Origin: Blastocladiella emersonii ATCC 22665
Lineage: Eukaryota > Fungi > Blastocladiomycota
NCBI GenBank assembly: GCA_025594325.1
Contig: JANHCV010000014.1
Location: 372,001-436,000, forward strand
DNA: 64,000 nucleotides
Direction: 5' to 3'
Both the position numbers and the translations under genes were made by a program. The notes beneath the pieces were generated by a model. That model was not told the origin of the DNA, did not search any database, and worked only from the letters and a program-made list of their open reading frames with translations. Positions 35,979-41,764 of this stretch are shown piece by piece. Each line of letters begins with the position of its first letter. Within the stretch, counting starts at the first letter, position 1.

Positions 35979-37154
35979 ATGCACACTAAGAAGCGCACCC
36001 CGCTCGCCGGCAGCGGCGACCTTGCGCTCTTCGCGCTGCTCGCCGCCCTCACGCTCCTGAGCGCCACCACCACCAACGCCGCGCCCATCGACGCCTCGGC
36101 GCCGCGCGCGCGGCTGCGCACGCTGGTCATGTTCGGCGACTCGCTGACGGACTCGGGCAACGTGTACACTTTGACGAACCGGGCGTGGCCCCCCGCGCCG
36201 CCGCTGTACGACAACGGGCGGTTCACCAACGGGCTGACGTGGCCCGAGTACCTGGCCGAGTTTGTCGAGTCGGTCAACGCCGACAACCGCACCGTGGCCG
36301 TCCACAACTACGCGTTCGGCGGGTCCACGTCCAACGACTCGCTCGTCCAGGGGTACACGGGCGCCCGGAGCGATATCCCATCGCCCGGCGTCGACAAGCA
36401 GCTCGGCATGTTCCGCGAGTACATGGCCGCGCAGGTGCTCAAGAACGGGGGCGACGCGGCCAAGGCCGGCGAGGCCATGGGGCCCACGCTGTTCACGGTG
36501 TGGACGGGTGCCAACGACTTCTTTTTCGACATGCAGAAGGCCGCGCCCGCGCTCGTCGCGGCGAACGTCGTCGAGGCCGTCAAGCAGATCGAGCACCTCG
36601 CCCGCAACGTCTACAAGCTGCCCCGGTACGAGATCGCGGTCCTGTCGATGCCCCCGCTCGGCACCCTGCCCGCCCTCGCGCGACTGCCGGCGGCGCAGGC
36701 GGTGTTCGCTCAATACTCGCTCATGTTCAACATGGAGCTGTTCAACCGGCTGGAAGCTATCAACCGCGACTACGGCAGCCGCGGCAACGTGTCCGAGGGA
36801 ACCGTGCCGTACCCGCTGATCCGCCTCATCAACATCCACGCCCTCATCTCGGCCGTGTTCGCGTCGCCCGAGACTTTCTACCTGCCCAAGCCCGTTTTCG
36901 GGTCCATTTCGACCCCGTGCCTCGAGCAGGACCTCATCACCGGGGCGTACTCCCTGTGCCGTGAACCGTCTGCGCACGTGTACCACGACATTTATCATTT
37001 CTCCACACGTATCCACCGCATCATCGCACGCGCAGTCGCTGGGGAGTTCCTTATTTTCGTCCCCGCGCTCTCCCCCGCCAACCCCGACGGCACCGAGCCC
37101 GCCACCATGATGTCGGCCAACCGCACGTCGGCGGCTGTCAAGCCCGCGCACTAG
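35979..37154 (+). CDS. Secreted GDSL/SGNH lipase-esterase
   Basis: Signal-peptide-like N-terminus; blocks FGDSLTDSGN, GRFTNG, NYAFGG, GAND, DIYH. Confidence 0.93.
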   Translation: MHTKKRTPLAGSGDLALFALLAALTLLSATTTNAAPIDASAPRARLRTLVMFGDSLTDSGNVYTLTNRAWPPAPPLYDNGRFTNGLTWPEYLAEFVESVNADNRTVAVHNYAFGGSTSNDSLVQGYTGARSDIPSPGVDKQLGMFREYMAAQVLKNGGDAAKAGEAMGPTLFTVWTGANDFFFDMQKAAPALVAANVVEAVKQIEHLARNVYKLPRYEIAVLSMPPLGTLPALARLPAAQAVFAQYSLMFNMELFNRLEAINRDYGSRGNVSEGTVPYPLIRLINIHALISAVFASPETFYLPKPVFGSISTPCLEQDLITGAYSLCREPSAHVYHDIYHFSTRIHRIIARAVAGEFLIFVPALSPANPDGTEPATMMSANRTSAAVKPAH

Positions 37155-37467: not shown

Positions 37468-40400
37468 ATGCACCCAACCATGAATCTCTCTCCACCAAGG
37501 CGGACATCACCACGAGCAACGTCTGCCGCCGCCGCGCTGCTGGCCCTCGCCATCGTGGCCGCGGCGCTCGTTACCCGCGTCGCCGCCGTCTACTCCGGCA
37601 CGCGCTACGCATGGTCGGTACCCACCGCGTGCAGTACGATGAGGATAGAGGACTGAGTTTTGGGGGAACGTTAGGTCGCTCGCGGTCCGCGGCCAGCCCG
37701 CGTCGTCGTCCGTCGGGCTGTACCCGGTGCTCGAGCCGGGGAACAACTACACGCTGGTCGTGAGCATCACCAAGGTAAACTCCCTTCCCGCCCCCTCTCT
37801 CCTCTCACGCACACTCACGCCCTCGACCTCATCTAGTCCGCCTCCCCGTGCCTGACATGCGCGCGCGACCTGCACGCCGTCGGCGGGTACCCGGTCGTCT
37901 CCTTTGCCGACACCCTGCTCGCCGCGCAGCTAGACGTGACAGACGCCGTCGCCGTGCGCTCCACGTACTCGCCGACCGCGGGCACGTGGCAGATCCCCGT
38001 CACCGCCGCCTCGGGGGTCGTCGGCACCGCGCACCTGTACGTGCAGGCGTCCGTGTTCGTCCCGCCGTCGCTCGCGCGCGAGCCCGAGTTCGCCACGGTC
38101 CCGCAGTCGTTCGTGCTCGGCGTCACGCGGCTGTTTTCTGTGGGCAGTGATGGGATGCCGAAGACGGGGTTGGGGACGATCGCGCCAGTCCCCGCGGGTC
38201 TCGCGGCGCCGTTCGCGCTGTCAAAGTCGCCGACGGTCGCGGTCCTCAACTCGCGGCTCGTCGTGTCCGCCAACGAGTGGCGGACGTCCGCCATGGTCAC
38301 GCCGGCGTGGTCCGCGGGGTTCCGCGCGGCGAACCCCGTCGTGTGTTCCGGTGCAACGGATACCACCGTCCTCGACGCGAAAGCCGTCGCGGGTACGCTG
38401 CTCCTCGCGACGACGCGCGGGCTCGTCGCGTACACGGGCGGGTCGAACCTGACCGCGATCCTGCCGCAGTGCATCACGACGGTCGTCGCCGCACAGAGCC
38501 GCGACCCGGTGCTCGCCAAGTGCACCAACGCCGCGGCGCTGTCGAGCTCGCGCATCTGGCGCGTCGATGTCGCGACGTTGGCCGTGGCGGAGCTCGTCTC
38601 GGCCGACAACCAGACCCTCGCGCAGTTCCTGGGCGTGGCCGCGACGTCGCTGACGCTCGTCGGCGCCGACTTCTCGTCCGAGGACTGCCGCAACCTCGCG
38701 GTCCTGTACACGCGCGGCGGCGTGTACCACGTCGCGACGATGACGGACGGCGCGTGGATTGTCCGGTTCAAGTTCCCGGCCGCGGTCCCGTTCTACTCGC
38801 CGGCCAGCGCCACGCCGCAGCTGTTCAACGGCTCGACGGCGATCCAGTACCCGACCGCGTACACGGTCACGACAACGGGGAGTCGGGATTTGAGTCTGAG
38901 CAGGATCACGTACTCGGAGCTGCCGACGGGCGAGCTGTTCGTGTACGGCTCGGCGCTGTTTTACAGGTACGAAAGGGCGGGCGAGGTGGACGGCGGCAAG
39001 GACTGACGACGGCCGCGATGTAGTCCCGACGACGGCGGGTCGCAGTACCTCATGGAAGTCTTCCCGTCGCCCGTCTCGATCGTGGCCCTCGACTCGTCCG
39101 ACTCGGCCTACTCGTACCTGTACATGACGTCCGACAACATTGTACGCCTCTCACACTTCCCTTCTCTTCCCCTCACTAACCTCCCCTCGCGTAGATCTAC
39201 GGCGGCCTGACGCCGTTCCCGCAGACCATGGCGCTGACCCAAGCCGCGTCCTCAACCGTCGCCGTCGGGTTCGACTCGCTCGACGCGCCGTACGCGCTGC
39301 GGTACGACGCCGCCTCTGGCGCCCTCGTGCGCACGGACCTGCGGTGGGGCGCGCTGTGGGACCCGGCGGTGATGCAGGCCGCGGCCGAGACCGCGACCAC
39401 GGGCGTGCCCGCGACGTGCCCTTACGAGTCGTTGCGGGTCCAGGGCTCGCTGTCCCCCACCTTCACCCGGTCGGCCGTCGTCGTCCCGCAGTCGTCGGGC
39501 GCCGACCAGGCCGCCCTGTCGCGCGTCTCGATCGCGCTCCCCGCGGCCATCTACCTCGACTACCACCAGTCGTACACGTTCACCGTCGACCTATCCCCGG
39601 CCAAGGGCACGAGCCTCGCGGCGCTCGAGCTCGCGGTGAAAGAGTCCAACTCGGCGCTCCTGCACGTCGACATTGTGCGGACCGAGGTCGCCGGCGAGCA
39701 CCGCGTCACGTACACGGTCACGGTCACGGACCGCGGCACGTACCCGCTGCAGCAGGTGCCGGGCGACGCGCCTGGGTCGGCCACGCTCGCGGTGCATGTT
39801 TTGGGGGGCGAGCCGTGCCCGATCTCGGCCATCGGACCGCTCGTCGTGTACATCGGGTGTCCGCCGGGCCTCGCGCTCGAGGTCGACGCGCCCGCCGCCG
39901 GGTCGCAGCAGTGCGTGAACGCCGACCCCGGCGTCCCGTGCTTCCACATGGACGCCGACTACAAGCCGACGTACACGCTCGTCGACACGGTCGCCGGCAC
40001 CCGCACGCCGTTCGCGCAGCCCGTCACCCTGCAGCTCGTGGCCGCGGGTCCCGCGCCGCGCGCCCTCACCGCCATCCCGCACGACGCAATCGCCACCACG
40101 AACCTCCTGACGTGGGCCCCCAACACGGACGGCGACCCGGTCCAGCTCCCCGACTCGCGGTACGTGTACCCGGGGAACGCCGTCAACGTGTCGTGGGTGT
40201 GTCTCGGCGGCTCGCCCTGCTCGGGCGTCGTCCCAACGTTCCCGAACCCCGCCGAGTACTACTTTGTCGTCGAGACGAGCACCGCGGGCGTCGCGGCCGG
40301 GATCTCGTACTGTTTGCTGTCCACGCGGCACCCGGTGCGGCTGTACGGCCTCGCCGTGGATCTCGCCACGTCGCTCATCGCCACGGGGATCACGCTCGCG

Positions 40401-40802
40401 GTCACCGTCGCCCTCGTCCTCGCGGCCGCCGCGTGGCAGAGGCACAAGCACGTCCGCGACATGTTCCGCGTCGCGCCCGCGGCTGCCGCCGTTGTCAAGC
40501 CGCCCATGGCCACGGCGGGGCAGCAGCCCGTGCGGTCGGCGATGCGGCCCGGCACGGCCACGGTGATGATGGGCTCCGCTCTCGCCGGGGCGGGGGCGGC
40601 GGGGTCGAGGCCCGGGTCGGGCCGGTCGCGGCACAGCGTCGACTCGCAGATGGCGCCGCTCATGGGTGGCGTGGGCGCGGATGTGGGCGAGGAGGGGGTG
40701 TCGACGGCGACGGCGGGGGCGGGCGCAACGGGGGTCGGCGGGGTGCATCCGATCATGCGCACGCGGCCGGCGATCCCGGAGGAGGACACGCCGAGTATTT
40801 GA
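37468..40802 (+). CDS. CATSPERE: CatSper auxiliary subunit epsilon/delta-like type-I membrane protein (about 5 exons; introns near 37614-37674, 37775-37836, 38968-39023, 39141-39194)
   Basis: Signal peptide, large Cys-containing ectodomain, C-terminal YIGCPPG...PCFH.D.DYKP...WVCLGGSPC...PAEYYF...SYC...RLYG, then one TM helix and a short tail. Resembles remembered CATSPERE/D C-terminal motifs. Confidence 0.72.
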
Positions 40803-41072: not shown

Positions 41073-41764
41073 TTAGTGGCCGGCACGGCGCGACTCGGCA
41101 ATGATGGTCGAGAGCTCCTCAACCTTGGCCTTGGCGCGGGTGAGGGTGCCGAGGCGCTTCTTGGCGAGCTTGCGGGCGCGCTTGTCCTTGGAGTTCTTGA
41201 GCAGCTCCATCACGCGCTTCTCGTAGGGCGCGAAGCCGGCAACCTCGCGGACGAGGGAGCGGATGAACTTGACGCGGGTGGTCATGGCCTGTGGAAGAGA
41301 GGGTGGGATGGTGAGCGGGAGGTCGGCGGATGGATGGGGGCGTGCGTGCGTGCGTGCGGGTCGCTCGCTGGTCGGGTGTAGGTGGCGGTGGCGGTGCTCT
41401 GCTCTGCTCGCCCTCGTTCATCGTCTCGCGCAGACGTCGCCGTGCGCTGCGTGATCATGCCGAGTGCAGCAGCGAATCGGCCGAGCGCAGATCCATGGTG
41501 CGAGCGAGTGCATGGCGAGAGGGTGGCGAAGCTCGAGCCAGCCGAGGCGGCGAGCGGATGTTGTTGATGATGTCGAAGAGCGAGTGCGAGACGAGCGAGA
41601 GCAGCAGGTGCACCACCACCCACACACGAGACCCAGCGCGAGCGAGCGACCGCGCACTACACGAGGTCGAGGCCGCTACGTACACCCTTGCGGCTGACGG
41701 GCTTGGCCTTCAGGGCGCGCTTGGTGGTGGGGTAGCCCTTGTTGAGACCGACGGAGATGCTCAT
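41073..41764 (-). CDS. RPL36: 60S ribosomal protein L36/eL36 (intron 41289-41683)
   Basis: [15 protein letters not shown]...SRKG / [48 protein letters not shown]. Confidence 0.97.

Follow-up and report, generated by a model that had tools for sequence, protein, structure and literature searches.

A probable orthologue of the CatSper gamma auxiliary subunit in the zoosporic fungus Blastocladiella emersonii

We analysed a window of 64,000 nucleotides from the genome of Blastocladiella emersonii ATCC 22665 (assembly GCA_025594325.1, contig JANHCV010000014.1, positions 372,001 to 436,000, forward strand), and all coordinates refer to this window. The gene studied here consists of five exons at positions 37468-40802 on the plus strand, and all exon frames are open in a frame-by-frame reading. 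The GenBank product of the gene is "hypothetical protein H9P43_009298" (1029 aa, here P0002). Its features are as follows.

37468..37613, plus strand: exon 1, with the start codon and a signal-like hydrophobic segment; ends in phase 2, with the donor GTCGGT
37516-37587, plus strand: signal-like segment, aa 13-36 of the deposited protein, from hydropathy
37675..37774, plus strand: exon 2, 33 full codons, predicted start of the N-terminal domain; equals P0002 aa 46-78 exactly
37837..38966, plus strand: exon 3, where the N-terminal domain is predicted to end at about 38202 and the beta-propeller, most of which lies here, to begin at about 38230
39024..39141, plus strand: exon 4, predicted beta-propeller blade segment
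39195..40802, plus strand: exon 5, predicted propeller end, Ig-like domain, stem (CATSPERG_C), transmembrane (TM) helix and cytoplasmic tail, and the stop codon
39537..39806, plus strand: CATSPERG Ig-like domain, aa 609-698, from Pfam PF22851
39849-39869, 39936-39986, 40194-40235, 40248-40292 and 40305-40349, plus strand: five motifs named in a first-pass annotation, located by sequence scan
39855-39869, plus strand: GCPPG motif, aa 715-719, between the Ig-like and stem matches and just upstream of the stem
39909..40421, plus strand: CATSPERG C-terminal (stem) domain, aa 733-903, from Pfam PF22846 and the alignment to 7eeb_F
40362..40436, plus strand: single TM helix, aa 884-908, from hydropathy, an AF2 helix at 884-917 and alignment to the TM helix of mouse CATSPERG2
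40437..40799, plus strand: cytoplasmic tail, 121 aa, predicted to be disordered (pLDDT <50 from aa 921)

The four introns are 53-62 nt long and have GT..AG ends at canonical splice sites, and the last one carries CTAAC upstream of the acceptor. The exons sum to 3102 nt with the stop codon included, which is a multiple of three, and the G+C content of the region is about 69%. When comparing the exon translations to P0002, we find that exons 2-5 are identical (exon 3 corresponds exactly to aa 79-454) and that exon 1 matches from its second methionine at 37480. Since exons 2-5 and exon 1 from 37480 are contained in P0002, our gene model is that of GenBank apart from the choice of start codon, which is 37468 or, as deposited, 37480. 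The splice model is based on frame, homology and the identical deposited model, and searches with the spliced product used the deposited P0002 instead of self-joined exons. The homologue of B. britannica is continuous over the exon 3/4 and exon 4/5 junctions.

A decaying or silent gene copy appears extremely unlikely. The five exons are open and correctly bounded by splice sites, the protein shares 48-50% identity with the B. britannica homologue, with cysteines and motifs conserved, and the gene is single-copy: a paralogue search of the genome itself detected no second copy, and CATSPERG_C was found at this locus only. These genome-wide scans, as well as those described below, covered the 21-contig assembly.

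The protein of about 1030 aa has a type-I topology. A Kyte-Doolittle scan found exactly two hydrophobic segments, the signal-like segment near the N-terminus and the TM helix, with a long ectodomain between them and the tail behind the TM helix. We thus agree with the first-pass annotation on the layout of the gene, as frames, deposited protein and hydropathy all support this topology and the five motifs are present at their places. The chain resembles a type-I membrane glycoprotein with a cysteine-rich stem and a disordered tail. The stem domain contains the conserved motifs PCF...D.V.G, W.C...SPC, YYF, YC and R.YGL. At the end of the tail, an alignment revealed the motif I(M/L)R(T/A)RP(A/V)IPE(E/D) (window 40752-40784), which is conserved in Blastocladiomycota and absent from animals. 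An exhaustive profile search detected 165 relatives at E<=0.001. The five C-terminal motifs correspond to conserved columns in this 165-member family and align residue by residue with mouse CATSPERG2; judged from these alignments, their conservation is far beyond chance.

The first-pass annotation had interpreted the gene as a CatSper auxiliary subunit of the epsilon type. Our analysis supports a CatSper auxiliary subunit in a zoosporic fungus, whereas Pfam, PDB and Foldseek all point to gamma and not to epsilon. In Pfam, the C-terminal domain of gamma (CATSPERG_C, PF22846) was matched with an E-value of 1.6e-11; with 44.9 bits for exon 5 and 43.3 bits for the full protein, it clears the cut-off of 27.6. 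The CATSPERG Ig-like domain (PF22851) was matched with 5.2e-7, at 30.1 bits on exon 5 and 28.5 bits on the full protein, which is marginally above the cut-off of 27; a beta-sandwich at aa 605-700 of the AF2 model backs this match. The CATSPERD/E profile that had been expected to match the locus (CATSPERD-E_C, PF22850) did not do so with either exon 5 (E<=1) or the full protein (E<=10), and we found the two CATSPERG domains instead. When scanning the PDB by sequence (phmmer, E<=10), the only matches were mouse CATSPERG2 (7eeb_F, 8e-13) and its 9UBW version. A two-species profile detected CATSPERG2 at 1.9e-20, spanning the Ig-like domain, the stem and the TM helix, and the beta, delta and epsilon chains in the PDB gave no sequence match at E<=10 even with this profile. 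In the alignment to 7eeb_F, IGCPPG, PCF, WxCLxxSPC, PE(Y/F)(Y/F)F and (S/T)YC are motifs of gamma. WLCLENSPC, PEFFFK and STYC, which the first-pass annotation had given as motifs of CATSPERE, are in this alignment present in mouse CATSPERG2 and had been attached to the wrong subunit.

For the N-terminal half, exon 3 alone retrieved nothing from Pfam or PDB by sequence, nor did the first 600 residues, and the Pfam models CATSPERG_beta-prop and CATSPERG_NTD (PF15064, PF22840) have no direct match to P0002. Furthermore, the propeller and NTD models of gamma, delta and epsilon have zero matches in the whole genome; these models are too animal-centred to be informative here. As the direct Pfam models are silent, it is by comparing profiles with profiles and by comparing folds that we establish homology for this half. 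A jackhmmer search seeded with aa 37-605 retrieved N-terminal regions from proteins in which all four animal CATSPERG domains are present. In an independent comparison, we aligned a profile of nine fungal N-termini to a profile of six animal CATSPERG N-terminal domains and propellers using hhalign, which resulted in a probability of 97.6% and an E-value of 4.8e-12 over 482 columns and mapped aa 69-587 onto the animal NTD and propeller. The domain limits within exon 3 were taken from this alignment and from the AF2 strands.

The AF2 model, based on a 105-row alignment, has a pLDDT of 81.6 and a pTM of 0.76. It comprises an N-terminal beta-sandwich, an Ig-like sandwich, a stem, the long helix 884-917 and a disordered tail. 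About 29 strands at aa 212-542, a number taken along the DSSP string and not from a count in 3D, are consistent with seven four-stranded blades. When comparing the model to the PDB with Foldseek, the best match is gamma (7eeb_F) with an E-value of 8.7e-43 and TM scores of 0.61/0.60 over the full length; in the structure alignment, about 15% of the residues are identical between the fungal protein and mouse gamma. Epsilon (7eeb_H, 5e-29), delta (1e-21) and beta (6e-20) rank next, and nothing comparable follows. The four best matches are thus the four auxiliary chains of the CatSpermasome, which indicates that the fold is shared by the whole auxiliary family, with gamma closest. The first-pass annotation had proposed this comparison as a check of its epsilon reading; it recovers the CatSper auxiliary fold, and gamma leads epsilon by 14 orders of magnitude in E-value.

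The shared architecture of the four auxiliary subunits is also what could still suggest an epsilon or delta/epsilon-type subunit, with the AF2 model matching 7eeb_H as given above. In addition, an ESM Atlas feature search with aa 36-600 returned only CatSper-auxiliary clusters and ranked an epsilon cluster first; however, its score of 0.83, like all others, is below the level of 0.9 required for more than a lead, and the search does not tell the subunits apart. We consider this reading very unlikely. The locus has no match to CATSPERD-E_C, CATSPERE_Ig-like or Beta-prop_CATSPERE, and the epsilon and delta chains in the PDB are unmatched by sequence. Part of this absence needs to be read with care, since the models of the CATSPERE Ig-like domain (PF22849) and of the epsilon/delta beta-propeller (PF22844, PF15020), which have zero matches genome-wide, also miss the epsilon-type gene on contig 16, and their absence therefore has little discriminating power. 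The CATSPERD-E_C scan of the whole genome yielded matches on contigs 16 and 11 only and not at the locus studied here. On contig 16, a 972-aa open frame (about 692765-694927 of that contig) matches CATSPERD-E_C at 1.2e-13, and in the PDB it is closest to CATSPERE (2.1e-9) and CATSPERD (5.8e-5). By its sequence matches, this is the genome's actual epsilon-type gene.

The domains of the relatives also speak for gamma only. Among the 46 long relatives, CATSPERG_C was found in 45, CATSPERG_Ig-like in 33, CATSPERG_beta-prop in 16 and CATSPERG_NTD in 14, and a CATSPERD/E domain was found in none. The nearest relatives belong to Catenaria, Allomyces, Sorochytrium, Coelomomyces, several chytrids, Pigoraptor and Chromosphaera, and named relatives further out, from Latimeria and Paratrimastix, are labelled "subunit gamma". 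In UniRef, Allomyces AMAG_15935 is a "CATSPERG C-terminal domain-containing protein". A word-index protein search returned the B. britannica protein and P0002 itself, and no others. We inferred a quick ML tree from 25 named rows of gamma-family relatives, with all unnamed rows omitted. The clades of Blastocladiomycota, chytrids, Fungi and animals have SH-aLRT values of at least 96, and the protein from the window groups with those of B. britannica and Catenaria. The branching order (Blastocladiella and Catenaria, then Allomyces, Coelomomyces, Sorochytrium, chytrids, holozoans and animals) is that of the species tree, and the gene tree thus fits vertical descent.

In every discriminating test, on sequence as well as on the predicted model, gamma comes out as the nearest subunit, ahead of beta, delta and epsilon. 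We found the gamma C-terminal and Ig-like domains, homology to the gamma NTD and propeller, gamma as the closest subunit, type-I topology and the co-occurrence with CatSper partners. We thus conclude that the gene is very probably the B. emersonii orthologue of CATSPERG, the CatSper gamma auxiliary subunit. According to the account of Cai et al. 2014 given in Chung et al. 2017 (PMC5362262), CatSper1-4, beta, gamma and epsilon have in common an early eukaryotic origin and lineage-specific losses. The gamma family is ancient in eukaryotes and has already been reported from Allomyces, and the B. emersonii gene is an ordinary, so far unnamed orthologue. Given the Allomyces precedent, a CatSper gamma subunit in Blastocladiomycota is no novelty as such; here, a deposited "hypothetical protein" gains a name and the subunit assignment is corrected from epsilon to gamma.

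We further searched the genome for other CatSper genes. For beta, CATSPERB_C was matched on contig 11 (4e-38). Among 31 Ion_trans matches, we detected a CatSper2-like pore gene on contig 5 (best match CatSper2, 3e-42; two paralogues), a CatSper1-like pore gene on contig 4 (best match CatSper1, 2.7e-23; one paralogue) and a CatSper3-like pore gene on contig 15, which aligns end to end with CatSper3 (6.9e-43) and whose filter contains Ser/Gly and lacks the acidic residue. A gene on contig 1 with a TQDGW filter can only tentatively be called CatSper4-like from its sequence, as CatSper4 is the best CatSper chain for each exon and Nav chains score equally. The first-pass annotation had tied its reading to the presence of CatSper partners, and beta, an epsilon/delta-type subunit and CatSper1-, CatSper2- and CatSper3-like pores are indeed found, so that the genome does not lack pore subunits. 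These matches help to show that B. emersonii carries what appears to be a near-complete CatSper complex. As the CatSper3-like gene has no acidic filter residue and the CatSper4 type is tentative, the complex might depart from a canonical Ca2+-selective CatSper channel.

A name given by ancestry might not reflect function, and the protein could be a member of the gamma family that acts outside the CatSper channel, for instance in adhesion or as a surface receptor of its own. The long tail with its Blastocladiomycota-specific terminal motif absent from animals would fit this possibility, and there are duplicates among the pore subunits and an unusual filter in one of them, which suggests that the complex may have diverged. 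We nevertheless regard this as unlikely. The best-conserved parts of the protein are the stem and the TM helix, which touch the pore subunit in mouse, and the gene co-occurs with beta, an epsilon-type gene and pore subunits. Furthermore, CatSper1-4, beta and gamma show one pattern of presence and lineage-specific loss in the account of Cai et al. 2014 that is given in Chung et al. 2017 (PMC5362262).

For a CatSper gamma subunit, the mouse complex suggests how the protein might act. As described in PMC11514763 with reference to Lin et al. 2021, beta, gamma, delta and epsilon of the mouse CatSpermasome pair with S0/S2 of CatSper4, CatSper1, CatSper3 and CatSper2, respectively. In the same account, every auxiliary subunit combines a TM helix and a stem with an Ig-like domain and a seven-bladed propeller, and all except delta also have an NTD. 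By analogy, we infer that the gamma ectodomain would join those of beta and delta/epsilon in an extracellular canopy over the pore tetramer, of which gamma would form one quarter, and that its TM helix would pack against the voltage sensor (S0/S2) of a CatSper1-type subunit. Without gamma, a Ca2+ channel in the flagellar membrane of the zoospore may fail to assemble or to remain stable. Such a channel would convert sensory signals into changes of the flagellar beat, and gamma might in this way contribute to zoospore steering.

One sensory signal that could be processed in this way is light. The phototaxis model for B. emersonii (Avelar et al. 2014, PMC4046227) leaves the Ca2+ channel unidentified. 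In the cascade of this model, the rhodopsin-guanylyl cyclase BeGC1 is activated by light, and cGMP opens the K+-selective channel BeCNG1, followed by hyperpolarisation. A Ca2+ channel then opens and the flagellar beat is altered. It is possible, and we propose it tentatively, as the less probable outcome, that the B. emersonii CatSper set (gamma, beta, epsilon-type and CatSper1/2/3-like pores) provides the Ca2+ entry step of this cascade. In sea-urchin sperm, the corresponding Ca2+ channel is reportedly CatSper. If the proposal is true, a fungus steers by light via the chain of cGMP, K+ and CatSper that sperm use in chemotaxis. B. emersonii is a tractable fungal model of phototaxis, and CatSper is an obvious candidate for the Ca2+ channel that would follow the rhodopsin-guanylyl cyclase in the cascade; as the complex appears near-complete, the part of CatSper in phototaxis is open to concrete experiment.

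Lastly, we compared the B. emersonii protein to known systems. CATSPERE and CATSPERD (7EEB chains H and G) have a paralogous layout of propeller, Ig-like domain, stem and TM helix and are matched in structure (5e-29 and 1e-21, respectively), whereas the B. emersonii protein has no sequence-level match to them and no CATSPERD-E_C domain. With mouse CATSPERG2 and human CATSPERG (7EEB chain F; 9UBW chain F), it shares the domain order of signal, NTD, beta-propeller, Ig-like domain, stem and one TM helix. Its co-linearity with mouse CATSPERG2 extends over some 1000 residues (Foldseek 8.7e-43, TM 0.6), and the stem motifs GCPPG, PCF, D.VTG, W.C...SPC, (Y/F)(Y/F)F and YC align together with the helix that follows. 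However, the fungal protein is only about 15% identical to mouse gamma and has no direct match to the Pfam models of propeller and NTD. Furthermore, the tail of 121 aa is much longer than that of mouse or human gamma and bears the fungal terminal motif. The swimming cell also differs, as it is the asexual zoospore in B. emersonii and the sperm for mouse and human gamma. The zoospore behaviour of B. emersonii studied so far is not known to involve a sexual cycle. The gametes of Allomyces are drawn by sirenin. Sexual stages of Allomyces express CATSPERB/G/D homologues (bioRxiv 10.1101/230292), and CatSper gamma was reported from Allomyces by Cai et al. 2014, as cited in PMC5362262. Full-length relatives are AMAG_15935 / AMAG_06763 of Allomyces macrogynus and BCR44DRAFT_1438922 of Catenaria anguillulae, with E-values of 2e-208 and 2e-270, respectively. 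Although these homologues are only 40-48% identical to the B. emersonii protein, they share both its domains and its tail motif.

The CatSper gamma gene of B. emersonii (H9P43_009298) is flanked in the window by two genes:

35979-37154, plus strand, upstream of gamma: single-exon GDSL-type lipase/esterase of 391 aa (Pfam Lipase_GDSL, 8e-14)
41073-41285, minus strand, downstream of gamma: last exon of the ribosomal protein L36e gene (Pfam, 4.9e-31)

The lipase/esterase has a signal-like segment at its N-terminus and is unrelated to CatSper.

In the cytoplasmic tail of gamma, which is otherwise disordered and little conserved, the alignment of gamma relatives revealed one conserved motif at the very end:

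40752-40784 (aa 1014-1024 of the deposited protein): I(M/L)R(T/A)RP(A/V)IPE(E/D)

This motif is common to Blastocladiella, Catenaria and Allomyces and weaker in Coelomomyces; it is absent from the animal gamma proteins in the alignment. It may serve as a trafficking or docking signal.

Two deposited models of gamma relatives both appear imperfect. As the B. britannica model BC828DRAFT_403824 begins only at the equivalent of B. emersonii gamma aa 283, its N-terminus was probably left out. In the alignment, the A. macrogynus model AMAG_15935 lacks the TM region, which its paralogue AMAG_06763 retains.

When comparing copy numbers in the B. emersonii assembly, we find one copy each of the gamma, beta and epsilon-type genes, whereas two pore subunit genes are multi-copy, as recognized by very similar translations:

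C5:1023267, C5:828780 and C1:209928: three copies, CatSper2-like
C4:970466 and C19:1945331: two copies, CatSper1-like

These duplicates could allow alternative pore compositions.

The CatSper3-like gene matches the CatSper3 chain of the mouse CatSpermasome structure (7eeb_C) over its full length (6.9e-43):

C15:297988-298671 (1150-2442 of locus L009), minus strand: single-exon CatSper3-like channel

Its pore loop reads TSSGW and has no acidic filter residue, so the fungal complex may select ions differently. CatSper pore loops carry T-x-D-x-W at the same place, and in mouse every CatSper subunit supplies an acidic filter residue (PMC11514763).
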